A DNA stretch of 64,000 nt from Dicyema japonicum (lineage: Eukaryota > Animalia > Dicyemida). Below the pieces are notes generated by a model. The model did not search any database, was not told the DNA's origin, and saw only the letters and a list, made by a program, of their open reading frames with translations. This document shows positions 36,900 to 46,280 of this stretch, in pieces. The translations under genes and the position numbers were made by a program. Numbering within the stretch: the stretch's first letter is position 1; each line of letters begins with the position of its first letter. The stretch is taken from the NCBI GenBank assembly GCA_011109175.1, contig RDEW01000038.1, positions 429,155 to 493,154 on the forward strand, written 5' to 3'.

Positions 36900-39800
36900 C
36901 TTTCGATTCGTGGCGTTAAAACTCTCTCGAGTTGGTATAAATGTTGAAAGGAAAAAAGGAGAAGGGTCACTTGCGTTACCTGATGGTATGAATATAATTT
37001 TTAACATATCCGAGAGCGTTGTGGCAGCTGACCCAAAAGAATGGGCGAGGCAGGTAGTCCTGCTGGTACGTAGCCGAATACCCTGGAATGGTGGCCATAC
37101 TCGGCGGAGCTCTGCAGTGGCAGATTCAGTACTGCTATATCTGTGAGTGAACTCAGGAAAATGGCTGTAGGCAAAGAGGGCACTGGTCTAAAGGGGCGGG
37201 GACCAGATAACCACAACTGTCAAAGAGAGCACGAGCACCAGAGTTGTGATACGTTGCAGCTCAAGCATGTTTATGAGGTCTTTGCGTGGAATCTTGTTGC
37301 AGCTGCAGATGTCCTACTTGAGGACCGTAGATTTACCCGAAAGATCTCTCATTGTAAGGTTAACGGAGTAGTTTAACCTGTATCAATAAAGCTGTGGCTT
37401 ATGCGATGGAGGCTAAGCCAGTAGGGTCACTTGGTGACATCTCCCTAGTACTGTATGCAGTGAAGATCACCTATGAGGAAATGACGGACAAGCTCAGACC
37501 ACCCAGTAAATGGAGGGAGCAGATCTGTGCCAAGATTGCTTTGAGACAGACTGAGCTGGAAGCACTGAAGGAGCACATAAGTAGTGTGGCGAGAGGGGTT
37601 TAAAAAAATCACCACCTATAGTAAAGGGGTTGCTTAGTAAACTCCGTGTTCCCAAATGGGGTCTCAAAGAGTTGAGGAGGGCAAAGGTGGAGTTAGAGGG
37701 GGCAATAATGGTGTATAAGAGGAAATTTTATACACATGAAAGTCGGTGTAAGAGAAGGAGAGAATATAATCTGTTTGAGTTTAATCGCAGATTGTTTTAC
37801 CGTCGCCTACACGAAAATGGCCATAGTGCATGTTCCCAGAGGACGCGGAAATGTTTTCCACATGGGGTTGTATGAGGCTAAACGACACAGAGGAAATGCA
37901 ATGTCCCGTACAGCGCCGCTCCTTTCTTGGCGGAATCTTGCGGAATTTTCGATTTTCGCAAGAAATTTGAGGCGGTAGTGAGACATCTCCCTGATTGGAA
38001 ACGACCGGGGTCGATAAAGTTTATAATTTCTTTATCAAAAGATGCACTTCATTACACGAGTCTATGTGTCGTGTATTACAGAAAAGCATCACTAACCCGG
38101 AAACGATTCCTGATTGGGCATGCACAGGGACAACTTATTTGATCCCAAAGCTGGACAACCCCCAGTCTGCTGCAGATTATCGACCGATAACCTGCATGCC
38201 AACCCTGTATAAGCTGATGACCAAATTGGTGGCTAATGAGGTCAGGAGCTTTGTAGACGCAAATGGGATTCTCTCCGAGAATCAGTTGGGAACTGTGCGA
38301 AATTGTCAGGGGGCAAAAGAGCAGGCTTTGATCAACAAATGCCTTTCTGTGTCTCACGGAAACTCACTTTTGTCTATGTGGGTGGATGTGAAGAGAAGTT
38401 GATCATTACCTTGTCGAGTGCCTACACAGTCTGTGTATGCCTGTGTGGTTCATCAGCTTTGTAGTGGCTGTGATGAATAGGTGGAGTATTCATCTGAACT
38501 ATAATAGGCACCGGATAGGCGAGGTAAAACTCAAGAGGGGGATCCTTCAGGGATAGCATGTCTCCGCTACTCTGTTCTTTTTTTAGACCCATTGAGTCGC
38601 CGCCTCAATGACCGGTTTGAGCAAATACCAGTTCATTGTGAAGGGGTTGTTTCAGTACAAATCACCTTCTTTTTATCGATGACCTGAAGATGTATGCTCG
38701 AACAGCCGAGGAGCTCTACTCCATGGGGGTCTGTGCCAGGGAATTCTTTGAGAGTATAGGCTAGACTTGAATTATTCAAAGTCTGCGACTAACACGCAAG
38801 TATATGTAGCGAGTTAGTAAGAGTCCTAGAGGAACACGAAGGATATAAGTATCTGGGTGTTACCGAACTCCAAAGTCCCTTATAATGCCTGAGACAAAGC
38901 GACAAATTACTGAAGGCATCCGTAAAAGAGCAGCGTTATTGTGTAAGACGTCTCTAAATGCAAGGAATTTGTTCCTAGCATTAAATGAGTATGCTGTCTC
39001 GCTGCTAAACTACTACATAGGTGTTGTGGAGTTTGAGCCCAAAGAGTATGATGAGATGGATGTTATGATCCGTGGAGTACTCAGAGAGAACCATGTCCAT
39101 GTGCTGGCAGCCAATAAGGAGAGACTATATTTACCCCGTGATAAATTCGGCCGTGGACTGTGTGGAGTAGTCCAACTAAGTGAGCGTATCCTAATGCGAA
39201 TGCACGACACCCTGATAGCCGGGTCAAGTGTGTCTGCTAGGAAGCACGCCATAATAGCGACCGAGAAAACAAGGGAAACCCACCTAGGCACTATCAGACC
39301 TTTATTGTCTGCCAAATATGGTGTTGATGATGGTGGGCTAGTAAATGTGAAGGCGTTGATCGAATTACAATATAATAATTTGATGGAAAAGATCAACTTA
39401 AAAAGCCTTCATAAGGTCCTCTTCAGAGCATTGGACAACCCACATGTCGACCTTAAGTCGTCGACAATATGGCTAAAATACGGTGACAACTCACCTCCAT
39501 CGGAGGCGTTGTACACGTATATGCAAGACCGCAATATTTTTTGGGGTCGATCAACAAATACATGTCCCCACTGTAAGTCAAGGAGCATGTCGGTTGATCA
39601 TTTAGCCACTCGATGTGGATCCATGTTCTGCCACGAGTATGTGTGGAGGAATAACGAGGTAGTAAGGAGTCTTCATCTTATACTATGCAATAAGTATGGT
39701 ATTCGCCACACCAGAAAGTTGCGGATTCATAAGGTGCAATCTGTAGTAGAGAACATTAGGGTCCAAATTTAGGTAGACAGTGTTATCCGTACCTCGGTGC

Positions 39801-40290
39801 TAGTCAAGCACAATTAACCGGACATTGTGGTACATGATAAGGAGTCTGGCCAAGTCCTTATCATAGAGGTTGGCATCACGTCTCAAGACCGTTTGCAGAC
39901 TGTGGAGGTGGAGAAAAAAAGGATGTATGACTTGCTTGCAAACGAGATGGAGCAGATGCTTGGTTGTAAGTCCTCGTTATTCCAATAGTAATGTGGGAAG
40001 AATTGTAACAAAGTACCACAAGGGTTATCTGAAGCAGTTGGGGGTAGAGGAAGCTCCAGGCCTATCTACAGTCCACTGTATTAAAGCGGACCCTAGAGAG
40101 CTTGACACTGGAGTATAGGAGGCAGAGCCCGGAGATGCCATATGGGCAGAAGGTTCAATAAGACAAGGCGCTCTCGGAGTCGTTTCAGCAACCAGAATCG
40201 AACCTGCCTGAGGAGGCTGGTAAACAGGCAGGCGAGGATGGTTGTTGATTATTAAGTATTTTAAGTATTAACTTTTTATTGTTGGTTAAA
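36900..40290 (+). mobile_element. Near full-length R4/Dong-like non-LTR retrotransposon (RT + CCHC + RLE), frameshifted
   Basis: GTTYLIPK...DYRPITCMPTLYKL...ENQLG...QGAKEQAL; FIDDLK; GYKYLG; RLYLPRDKFGRGL; CPHCKSRSMSVDHLATRC; PDIVVHDK...IIEVGIT. Confidence 0.85.
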
Positions 40291-41463
40291 TAAAGTTCAG
40301 TGTTATTTTAAAAATTTAACTTTCTACTAAAAAATGATTCCGTGATAAACCACAGGAAAAGGACTGGTATGGACACCGGGATCACATAATTAGACAATAA
40401 CTTTTATCCTCTTTCTTTTGGAGAGGTCGGAATCGGTTATTGGTATTGTTTTTTATTTAAAAAATAAACCTTGTGTGCCAATTTACGTGTTTTCTAACCA
40501 ATTTTAGAATTCTAACGAACTTTAATAAGGATTACTTATTGTTTGATTCGTGAGAAGGATTGGATGTAGGCTAACTCATATTCTAGGATAACATTGGTCT
40601 ATTCAAGTGAAGGAAACTAACACAAGAGAAATTAGCAAAAGCGGACGCACCAGGAAAACCGTCAGGTGAATCTGGTATGGTGCTGAATTCGAAGGAAGAC
40701 CAAAACGGAAGAAGAGGTGACCTGGCAATCTTGGAAGAAAGGCAATACCGACGAATCCGATTTTTGTTCATATAGTCTTTTGAATCATATTGTGACTAAC
40801 TTCTTGAGGGTAGAAAAGCTTCGATCTTCCAAGGTTTTCGTAGAAGACTGTGGATGAATTCTTTGACGTTGTACATTTATCAAGGAAAATTAGGTCATGT
40901 AGGAGGAAGTTATTTCAGATAAAATTTATATTTAGGTCAAAATTTTAGACAACAGACCAAGACTTTCTCCCTTACAAGCAACTTAAATTATTTTACTTTG
41001 TAGTGGCTACTAGACAACCGCCAAACTACAATTCTCAGGATTATTTTTATTTTATCTACATAACGCTGGGAAAAAACGAGAAATAAGATAATAGTAACCA
41101 TACTAATCTCAACTCCCTTATCGTCCTTACCACTTTCATTTTGTCCTCGTGTGCCTACACATGCTCATGTGTCTGTTGGGGAAAATTTCTGAAAATACAA
41201 GCCATTTTCCGATCGGACAAGGACAAACATAGCGGATTACCTGGTTCCTTATTAAACCTAAGGAATCCGCAGTAATTCTTTCGTATCGATGACTCCGAGA
41301 GATAAGTTTCCAGATTTATTTCAAATCAATAATTTTAAAATTGATAAATAATATATGTTAAAATTATTCAAAAATAATTCTAAATAAAATATAGGATACC
41401 TATTAATTCAGTTTATAATGAAAATATTTCATTTGCTTGTCTAAAATCTTATTGGTAAGTCAA

Positions 41464-42586
41464 ATGTCACTCCCAAGAAGTAAATCTCTATTCTTTCGTA
41501 CAAATTCCACTGAGAACACTTCCTTGCTAGAGAAAGGATTTCGCTGGTTCAAGAACAAAAATGAAAGTAGACAGAACAAGCGAGTTTCTGAAAACAGAAT
41601 GAAAATCCTCGTGACTGGTCTCCCTCTATCAGGGAAAACAAGTTTACTGAACCAACTAAAGGCTCAAACATTTTTTGGGTTCAACGGTGAAACCTACGAA
41701 GCTGCAATAACTGCAATCGAGAACCTCATCATCGAAACCATGGACTTGTTAATAAAGATTTTGTTGGAGGAAAATTTTCAAGATTATATACCTCATTTCT
41801 ACGGACTGTTGAATGATTTTCAGACCAGGAGAAAGAGCTATGGTACCCTCTCTATGCTAAAAACTATCATAAACCAGATTATGCTATATCCAATGTCAGA
41901 AACTGCCATTACAAGGCATTACTTTGAATTTGTATTCATTTCTGTCATTTTCAGCCTCAGAATTTTCGTTATTTCTTGGACAGATTAAATTGGATCGCAA
42001 ATGAGGTTAATTTGTGGTGACAGTTTAGGACTATTATCCCTCTTCCGAAGACATTATCCGTGCTTTGATTCCCTCAGAGGAGGTTGAGGAGACCTTCTTG
42101 GAAGTTCATAAGAATCTGTACATTATCACGGTCATGAGTGGGGCTCGACTGTTGAAATCCACCAAATCAATTGATTATTTTTATGATTCTACTGCGATCA
42201 TGTTCATGGTGAACTTGGATCGGTTCGAAATTGATCTAAAAACGGTCTTTGAAGTTTTCAATGAAATAACCCACGTGCAATATTTAGAGAAATCCTCCTT
42301 CATTATCTTTCTTAATAAAAGCCGGGATTTCAGGAAGAAACTAACGTCCGTTTACTTTGCCGATAGTTTCCCCGATTTTAACAACTTTGATGCTAAGACT
42401 GAGTTATCGATGGAAAGGAGAATTGAGAGATACGTCGAAGCCCGTCTGATTCAGTCATTTTTGAAATTTCAGGTTCATTTTATGTATATATGCGATGTTG
42501 TTGGATCGTTTTCTACCAAACATTTCCATAAATCAGTAAAGCTGTTGATTTTGAAATACAATCTGAACATGTACTACTTTCTGTAA
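41464..42586 (+). CDS. Highly divergent heterotrimeric G-protein alpha-like protein (probable pseudo-GTPase); 2 introns of 23 nt
   Basis: Exons 41464-41931, 41955-42005 and 42029-42586 form an uninterrupted frame. Motifs: KILVTGLPLSGKTS (G1); YFLDRLNWIANEDYYPSSEDIIRA; YFYDSTAIMFMVNL; FIIFLNKS; ADSFPDF; C-terminal ILKYNLNMYYFL. All are colinear with G-alpha-i/q. Start codon is the best guess. Confidence 0.8.
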
Positions 42587-43409
42587 GTCGCGATGCTCTA
42601 ATAACTCTAATTTTTACAAATTTAATAGATTTACTTTCTTGTGATATAATGAAAGTGTAGTGAATCTTTCTGTCACCCGTTCTTGGACAAGGTCGCTTGA
42701 GTTTATTGAGATTTGCATATTTTTTGACATTTAATGGGCAAAGTAAAGGGATATGACAGACTCTGCCTTTCTATCCAATATCGAAAGATCTCTTAGAAGA
42801 GAATTGAACCTCGCGAAATACTTTGATTGAGACAGAGGCTCGTAATGGAGGTGATCAGAGGAAACACTCACAAAATCTTGGCCTCTTAGTAAAATGACTT
42901 TAGTTGTTTTTAATTTAAAATTTAATTTTGAAGCCAAAAACGAACTCGACTTTTAATGAAGCGCGATCGTTCTCGTTTTCTCACTAAACACTGTTCATAA
43001 ATTCCGCATGTTTTATAAGATTTTTAGTCTTTAGTTTAGAATTCAAGGGGTTTCAAGACCCAATCTTTTGGTTTTAAAAGACGCTCTTATATTTTAGTTC
43101 CTTCTTCGCTTTTTAACCATCTTTGAGAGCCATTATTCAGGATTGGCTCCGTTTTCGCTTTATCATGAATGTTTTTGGATTCACATGAAAGCGAATAAGA
43201 AACAGTATTGAACACAATTTATTGAGATTTTAGTCAATTATTTAAATCGTGATAAACCTTGATGACTAAAGGACAGATTAATTTTCTCCCGTCTTGCCCA
43301 ACCTTCTGTGTGTTCTAAACACGGGATTAACCTGTTAGATCTCTGGGAACGCCCGTCATTGTTACTTGCGTTTTGTTAGTCATCGGTTTCCTTCACTTGA
43401 ATGTAAAAT

Positions 43410-43640
43410 AATAGCAAAACAGCGCAGTGTAATAAGTTCAGAGTCCGAGTTCGAATCTCAGTGCTTTCTATTCCGGTTGTAGGTTCCACGTATCTACAAT
43501 GCTTCTGAATTGAAGAGCGACGCCGAATCAGTGATTCACAAGCCCGGATTGTCTCAAGTACTAGCACGTGAGAAAAAAGAAAAGAATAAAAACACCTTGG
43601 ATTTTGAATTAATTAGCATGAATGTTCTTAAATAAAGTGA
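43410..43640 (+). mobile_element. tRNA-derived SINE, diverged copy
   Basis: AGCGCAGTG (A-box-like), GAGTTCGAATC (B box), core GGTTCCACGTATCTACAATGC...GACGCCGAATCAGTG...CGGATTGTCT, AATAAA. Confidence 0.55.
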
Positions 43641-45179: not shown

Positions 45180-46280
45180 GGATGCTTTCCCAGACTATAA
45201 TTCATTATATAAAATTCATCAAAGTTATTGGCATGAACATGGATAATCTGATTTTAAAGATTCTTCTAATTAACTGGGGTTAAGTTTTTGTTAATTTTTA
45301 GGAATCTGCTTCCTATCATTTCATAAAGAACATTCTTATAACATGATTTGAATGAGTTTATGATCCCCATATCTAAAGGTTGAAGAAGTGCTGTTATGTT
45401 TTTAGGAAGTTTAAGAAATGATAAGTTTGAATATTCCTGACATTTGTGACAACGTGCATTATCCATAATAATCAAAATTTTCCTGTTTTTTTGAACCATT
45501 TCGAAGTTTATTCTTTGTAGCCATGTATCAAAAATATCCATCGTCATCCATGCATTTTTGAAGCTGTATATTAACCCAACACAATATACCCCATAATCTT
45601 CTGTATTTATGTTTTTTAAGTATCTTGGGGATTTGAATTTCCCGATAACAAGAGGTTTTAATTTTTCTCCTTCACGGCTGCAGCATAAAAGAACTGAAAC
45701 TCGTTCTTTACTTTTCGTTTTACCGAAACAATCATCATTTGAATAGACAAATGATCTACATGAATTTTTTTAATAAAAAGAGAAGTTTCGTCGCAGTTAA
45801 AAATATCTTTTTTATCGTATTCCTCAAATAAACTGTCGTAATTGTTAAAAAACTCTTTAAGTTTTTTTTGTCGGATGAGTTTTTTTCACCCGAAATTACT
45901 TTGAATAGTAATTTCGCTTTTTAAATCGATCAAGCCATCCATTTGATGCATTGAAATCATTAAACTGAAATTTGGCAGCAATCTTTTTTGCAATATTTTT
46001 GAGGAGACATCCAGATACTGAAATCCCATCCTTTCTCAAATTGTTGAAGACTTCGAATACTAGTCGATCAATTTGAATAGAAAGGTCGGATTCAAACTTC
46101 TTGCATGAAACTTCCTTAAAAAATACTTTTTTGTTTAACGAAATATTTTCTTTTCCAATTTCTTTTTTAATTCGAGAAACAGTTCCTTTTCCAATCTTGT
46201 ATAATCGAAAAATTTTTCTTTCTGACATATTTTGATTTATTAAAGAATCGAATGTTGTTTCAAATGACGACTAAGCATCG
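45180..46280 (-). mobile_element. pogo/Tigger-family transposase (CENP-B HTH + DDE_1), disrupted
   Basis: ISVSGCLLKNIAKKIA...FNASNGWLDRFKKRN; FNCDET; LIIMDNARCH; LPKNITALLQPLDMGIINSFK. Confidence 0.85.

Follow-up and report, generated by a model that had tools for sequence, protein, structure and literature searches.

A divergent G-alpha gene of Dicyema japonicum with damaged GTPase motifs: a candidate pseudo-GTPase

In animal signalling, the textbook example of a GTP switch is the G-alpha subunit. The locus described here raises the question of whether a G-alpha can be kept in an animal without this switch, and the animal in question is Dicyema japonicum, a parasite of the octopus kidney belonging to a lineage which has retained only a handful of GPCRs. 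The locus is found in a stretch of 64,000 nucleotides which we call the window and to which all coordinates refer. A sequence-only reading of this window had proposed that the gene is intact, that its product has the G-alpha fold and that all of the residues needed for catalysis and for guanine specificity have been lost from it. We have analysed the gene model, the family and fold of the protein, the fate of each motif and the evidence for expression and selection.

The gene occupies positions 41464-42586 of the forward (+) strand, on which all its features lie, and codes for a protein of 358 residues in three exons separated by two 23-nt introns of the GT..AG type. Each of the three coding pieces is open; they stand in different frames on the genome and are joined at phase 0. 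Exon 1 (41464-41931, 156 amino acids) contains the basic N-terminal helix, beta1, the P-loop, alpha1 and most of the helical domain. It is followed by intron 1 (41932-41954), by exon 2 (41955-42005, 17 amino acids), which completes the helical domain and adds linker 2, by intron 2 (42006-42028) and by exon 3 (42029-42586, 185 amino acids and a TAA stop codon), which covers the Ras-like domain from switch I to its C-terminus. Among animals, introns of 23 nt are restricted to the dicyemid D. japonicum and the myxobolid myxozoans (PMC13644364). When public contigs were compared with positions 40500-43500, one contig of 1145 nt from the run X5 was found to span 41401-42591 minus exactly these two introns, with a 5' UTR from 41401 and the coding part at 41464-42586. 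The alignment program places the second gap at 42004, which is the same as 42006-42028 because AG is repeated at the junction. Both introns are present in contigs from the genomic runs X1 and X3. As nothing but the two introns is missing from the X5 contig, the gene is transcribed, its splicing follows the model, and the open spliced frame of the sequence-only reading is confirmed. Upstream of the ATG at 41464 there are in-frame stops within the X5 contig. The 5' UTR in the same contig also carries an upstream ORF of 8 codons (41418-41444, +), out of frame with the main ORF, and a donor-like consensus, GGTAAGT, is seen just before the start codon; it is unspliced in the contig. Three other origins of the gene were considered and rejected: a chance ORF by the family E-values given below together with the spliced transcript, a retrocopy by the presence of introns, and an assembly artefact by the presence of the gene in runs of two studies.

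The exons were searched, aligned and folded one by one. The Pfam family of G-alpha subunits, PF00503, matches exon 1 with an E-value of 3e-7 and exon 3 with 54.1 bits against a cut-off of 48.8. Searches of the PDB with phmmer return G-alpha chains only (Gq, Gs, Gt and Gi), with an E-value around 1e-7 for exon 3, and a phmmer search of 1.84 billion representative proteins with exon 3 gave 95 matches, the best having an E-value of 2.2e-9 and 28% identity; the matches inspected were all G-alpha homologues. A profile which we built from 36 diverse full-length G-alphas finds exon 3 at 6.6e-26 and residues 33-105 of exon 1 at 1.6e-9, and it puts exon 2 on the YF..ri block between these two matches. 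Between the profile matches there is a helical stretch of about 90 residues, and about 128 residues separate the P-loop from switch I. The gene keeps the two-domain architecture of G-alphas, in which the Ras-like domain is interrupted by an all-helical domain.

Structure prediction agrees with this assignment and with the G-alpha fold that had been read from the sequence. AlphaFold2, given exon 3 together with 37 homologous C-terminal halves, returned a model with a pLDDT of 82.7 and the expected order of elements, beta2-beta3-alpha2-beta4-alpha3-beta5-alphaG-alpha4-beta6-alpha5, and the top matches of this model in a Foldseek search of the PDB are all G-alpha chains with a TMq of about 0.7. 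For exon 1 AlphaFold2 predicts the N-terminal helix, alpha1 and four further helices (residues 75-151) at a pLDDT of 80-88. Foldseek found no significant match for the exon 1 half, and a VIA search with it gave generic helical bundles, the helical domain of Gi-alpha-1 being at rank 14 among ties (Z 6.7, residues 62-148); the fold search is non-specific here, as one would expect with a helical fragment.

An assignment to one of the G-alpha classes was attempted and rejected, as the Gq, Gs, Gt and Gi chains of the PDB score alike and the local resemblances do not suffice for it. Local identity is highest to a snail G-alpha, P0004 (30% over 188 amino acids with BLASTP, 38% over the matched stretch with phmmer), and to a canonical G-alpha, P0038 (Logan, SRR30260941). 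Residues 120-140 of P0038 share a patch of the helical domain with exon 1 at window positions 41800-41870, 'NDL..KGYGTLS' in P0038 against 'NDF..KSYGTLS' in exon 1, in a region which is otherwise variable. Judged by this likeness the patch could mark the parent class.

The motifs were called from our profile of 36 G-alphas and from BLASTP alignments, with the established residue numbers and roles of Gi-alpha-1. The P-loop (41617-41643) reads GLPLSGKTS. The Gly equivalent to G12 of Ras has become Pro and the Glu has become Leu, and the Walker A pattern G-x4-G-K-T is kept, with G52, G57 and K58 in invariant columns. The sequence-only reading had listed this P-loop among the changed motifs; its sequence was given correctly, and the Walker A motif GxxxxGK[ST] is intact. 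The stretch from switch I to switch II (42050-42148) had been aligned without gaps to G-alpha-i1, and both the profile and the BLAST alignments reproduce this, including the six replacements read from it. In switch I the catalytic Arg is Leu, the Mg-binding Thr is Ser, which is a conservative change, and the Thr-Gly that follows is Glu-Glu. In G3 the sequence DVGGQ has become VMSGA, so that the Asp is Val, the first Gly is Ser and the catalytic Gln is Ala, while the second Gly of DxxG is kept. After switch II one residue is inserted, and the Trp of switch II is Ser. A deletion of 9 residues is located at 42236-42241, where the ED...NRM segment between beta4 and alpha3 is missing; the same gap is seen in the profile alignment and in two BLASTP alignments. 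By the nomenclature in use for G-alphas this segment corresponds to switch III. Neither the deletion nor the inserted residue had been noted in the sequence-only reading. None of the three switch regions is thus left intact, switch I and switch II being changed and switch III deleted.

The two motifs that recognize the guanine base are also altered, much as had been proposed. G4 (42314-42325) reads NKSR, in which Asn and Lys are kept and the guanine-selecting Asp of NKxD is replaced by Arg. The G5 region (42488-42499) reads ICDV against the canonical TCAT in the hmmsearch alignment, so that the Ala of G5 is Asp; hmmalign moves G5 by one residue (CDV), and TCA is absent in both alignments. The earlier statement that all catalytic and guanine-specificity residues are lost calls for some nuance. 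It is correct for the catalytic Arg and Gln, for the Asp of DxxG and that of NKxD and for the Ala of G5; the Asn-Lys of NKxD is kept, and the replacement of the Thr by Ser is conservative.

The N-terminus, MSLPR, has no Gly at position 2 and exon 1 contains no Cys at all, in agreement with the absence of a lipidation motif noted earlier. The first 47 residues are basic, with 12 Lys/Arg against 4 Glu and a net charge of about +8. At the other end the last 12 residues of alpha5 (42548-42583) are in register with the canonical G-alpha tail; compared with the consensus I-x4-L-x3-G-x2 derived from 37 G-alphas, the Ile at -12 and the Leu at -7 are unchanged, and Tyr stands in place of the Gly at -3. 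Also kept are the Gln after Walker A, the DYxPSxED linker, the Lys and Phe of switch II/alpha2, the core of beta4, FLNK (Asn and Lys) and the Phe of alpha5. Altogether 16 of the 31 columns which are conserved in at least 90% of the 36 G-alphas are retained, and the losses cluster in G2-G5 and in the switch regions. A homologous GTPase fold from which catalytic motifs are missing is one mark of a pseudoGTPase, and it is found here.

What such a protein can do follows in part from the residues lost. Hydrolysis of GTP is not expected of a protein that has neither the catalytic Arg nor the catalytic Gln. With switch II rewritten, switch III deleted and the gamma-phosphate-sensing DxxG damaged, the protein should not have a canonical switch, and the changes in both G4 and G5 should leave it with a poor affinity for guanine nucleotides. 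Binding of RGS proteins has probably been lost since Thr-Gly is Glu-Glu; a Gly to Ser change at this Thr-Gly is the classic RGS-insensitive mutation in G-alphas. Judged from these residues, the protein probably acts by binding to partners and not by GTP cycling. We consider that there is somewhat better than an even chance that the gene is a functional, lineage-specific G-alpha paralogue which has turned into a pseudo-GTPase and works as an adaptor or decoy without a GTP cycle.

The mechanism which we propose for this pseudo-GTPase is that guanine nucleotides would be bound weakly or not at all, as in the plant protein XLG2, and that the protein would act stoichiometrically as an adaptor or decoy, possibly, and this is speculative, at a 7TM receptor. 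The likely contact surfaces would be those which are still G-alpha-like, namely the N-terminal helix, which is long and basic, and the alpha5 helix with its C-terminus in register. In canonical G-alphas the alpha5 helix inserts into 7TM receptors, and the Trp of switch II contacts G-beta and effectors. The weight is placed on the N-terminal helix and the alpha5 tail because the Trp facing G-beta is lost, and the change of this Trp to Ser also makes a role as decoy for G-beta-gamma doubtful. Two further features of the sequence speak against this proposal. The tail that docks to receptors no longer has its Gly at -3, and the retention of Walker A, of Ser at the Mg-binding position and of the Asn-Lys of G4 goes beyond what is usual in nucleotide-free pseudoGTPases. 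With these residues kept, weak or non-specific binding of nucleotides is therefore possible.

A comparison with known systems helps to place the protein. With the canonical G-alphas (PF00503; Gi/o, Gq, Gs, G12/13 and Gv) it shares a similar length and a Ras-like domain into which a helical domain is inserted, as well as the N-terminal helix, Walker A, the linker DYxPSxED, the cores of beta4 and FLNK and the in-register alpha5 tail. In contrast to them it has neither the catalytic Arg and Gln, the Asp of DxxG and of NKxD, the Ala of G5, the RGS-contacting Thr-Gly and the Trp of switch II, nor switch III, nor a site for myristoylation or palmitoylation. Its best analogue is XLG2 of Arabidopsis, a 'decoy G-alpha' which binds GTPgammaS 100-1000-fold more weakly and which still binds RGS and G-beta-gamma in a nucleotide-independent way (bioRxiv 10.1101/795088). 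Both have the G-alpha fold without the catalytic Arg and Gln and with a bulky residue for the Ala of G5. The two differ in that one is from an animal and the other from a plant, with an independent origin, in that XLGs have a long N-terminal extension which is absent here, and in that XLG2 has lost the P-loop Lys whereas the Dicyema protein keeps Walker A and has switch III deleted.

Degenerate G-alpha paralogues of fungi occur among the 95 nearest matches, for example in Coprinopsis (KAH6881252.1) and Stereum hirsutum (EIM81013.1). They are likewise of full size and have several of G1, the catalytic Arg, DxxG, the catalytic Gln and G4 replaced. They differ in belonging to unrelated lineages, with 25-32% identity, and in being uncharacterised, and none has this combination of losses together with a deletion of switch III. 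The pG domains of p190RhoGAP, CENP-M and Rnd/RhoH are pseudoGTPases from GTPase families other than G-alpha. In pseudoGTPases of the small-GTPase kind the fold is kept for protein-protein interaction and there is no catalytic cycle (PMC5593906, PMC12490416), which is also the concept proposed here. An animal pseudo-G-alpha is not mentioned in the literature on pseudoGTPases and atypical G-alphas, as represented by a limited set of open-access texts. Degenerate G-alphas are thus known from fungi and, as XLG, from plants, and within this limited search an animal G-alpha kept without its switch is apparently unreported.

Another possibility is that the protein is dead in hydrolysis and still bound to a nucleotide, either GTP or, non-specifically, another NTP such as ATP, so that it is locked in one state and signals constitutively. 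Class II pseudoGTPases such as Rnd and RhoH are of this kind. For the Dicyema protein this idea draws on the GxxxxGKT in its invariant columns, on the conservative nature of the change from Thr to Ser, and on the retained Asn and Lys of G4 and second Gly of DxxG. We nevertheless hold it to be unlikely: the Asp of DxxG, the Asp of NKxD and the Ala of G5 are all replaced, switch III is deleted, XLG2 shows its loss of affinity with comparable changes in G5 and in the catalytic residues, and a conformation resembling the canonical 'on' state is not to be expected when switch II is rewritten.

The sequence is highly divergent. Over aligned columns the median identity to the 36 reference G-alphas is 24%, compared with a median of 36% for the references among themselves. 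No orthologue or self-match was found in the exhaustive phmmer search with exon 3 of the 1.84 billion representative proteins, a collection from which D. japonicum's own proteins are absent. A scan of metagenome contigs gave no match, nor did a word-index protein search with exon 3 among proteins of 102-324 amino acids, a set which lies outside full-length G-alphas and the organism's own ORFs, and an Rfam search of the window had no match either. One contig of 183 nt from the run X6, which carries another organism label and dates from 2015, is identical to the 3' part of the gene (42388-42570) at a depth of 2. It may come from host tissue containing the parasite or from carry-over, and it is no evidence for a homologue.

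Such divergence could mean that the gene is decaying, that is, a paralogue made redundant by the loss of receptors which drifts towards a pseudogene and is transcribed without a selected function. The reduction of GPCRs in dicyemids is indeed massive, with 2 rhodopsin-type, 4 secretin-type and 1 mGluR receptor left in Dicyema (PMC6543705). These receptor numbers also form the background of the functional reading, together with the 14 genes matching PF00503 and the 7 RGS genes of D. japonicum, compared with 33 and 24 in octopus, where the PF00503 counts include weak cross-matches to Arf-type proteins in other species (PMC6736024 supplement). The position of the gene between remnants of a LINE and of a pogo-type transposon would also fit with decay. 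Upstream there is a remnant of a reverse transcriptase with a weak match to RVT_1 (37995-38399, +), and downstream a remnant of a pogo/Tc5-type DNA transposon (45269-46228, -) with DDE_1 at 2e-15 and HTH_Tnp_Tc5 at 4e-12 in separate ORFs. ORF fragments of a non-LTR retrotransposon are seen over 37600-40100 (+), where the GC content of 0.44 is the highest of the window, and an ORF of 295 amino acids in this region (38885-39772) has no Pfam match. At 42806-42859 and 43320-43500, a short way beyond the 3' end of the gene, the depth of contigs from the genomic runs goes up several-fold and many matches are partial or end loosely, which marks short repeats of high copy number. The window as a whole has a GC content of about 36%, and the D. 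japonicum genome has 36.7% GC and 49% repeats (PMC6736024).

Several observations stand against decay. In spite of the divergence, and in a sequence of 64% A+T, the frame is open across 358 codons and neither pair of splice sites is damaged. The residues of the structural core have been retained, both termini stay in register, and AlphaFold2 is confident for the Ras-like half. A comparison of alleles points in the same direction. The X5 contig differs from the window at five positions, one in the 5' UTR and four in the coding sequence, and all four of the latter are third-position, synonymous differences. As 35% of the transitions possible in the ORF are synonymous, the probability of finding four of four under a neutral model with transitions only is about 0.014. 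This points towards purifying selection on the gene, with four polymorphisms being a small sample, and is in line with the constraint which had been suggested from the lack of stops. On balance we regard decay as a distinctly improbable explanation and prefer the functional pseudo-GTPase.

Much of this depends on what the run X5 is. It dates from 2017 and comes from a sample and a study distinct from those of the 2019 genomic runs X1-X4, and so the expression called for by the sequence-only reading is seen in an independent sample. A single assembled contig supplies the evidence for expression, and the type of its run is guessed. We read X5 as a transcriptome; its automatic label, 'DNA?', is a guess, and it is this label that would allow the contig without introns to be taken for the DNA of a processed retrocopy and not for RNA. 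This is highly improbable, since the contigs of X5 amount to only 12 Mb, since in the 3-kb stretch compared they cover 41401-42591 and one repeat and none of the flanks, and since a form of the gene without introns is absent from the genomic runs X1 and X3. Finally, although GTPases with relocated or non-canonical catalytic residues exist, a working GTPase of this kind is scarcely credible for the present protein, which has lost an entire switch region in addition to five independent motif positions and which offers no direct support for it.

If the pseudo-GTPase is what we think it is, its relation to certain engineered proteins deserves comment. In engineered dominant-negative or 'empty-pocket' G-alphas the Asp of NKxD, the Gly of DxxG or the Ala of G5 is mutated, sites which are changed in the Dicyema protein too, and these mutants hold receptors or G-beta-gamma without cycling. 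Chains of mini-G proteins are found among the PDB matches of the Dicyema protein. The engineered mutants and mini-G proteins differ from it in having otherwise canonical backbones, and mini-G in having no helical domain, which is kept here. A further and more tentative proposal, to which we would give a minority chance, is that the protein is a natural nucleotide-free 'frozen' G-alpha, in which the receptor-facing alpha5 and the N-terminal helix are all that is used and which might serve as a clamp, decoy or adaptor on one of the 7TM receptors remaining in dicyemids. If true, evolution would have arrived at a counterpart of the dominant-negative and mini-G proteins made by engineering, and the XLG decoys of plants would have their first parallel in an animal.

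The protein might also provide a scaffold for receptor-binding tools. The known natural precedent, the plant XLGs, altered the views on G signalling in plants. In the Dicyema gene we have a compact, soluble and expressed G-alpha fold with its three switches disabled, and thus a natural experiment on how a G-alpha can function without GTP.
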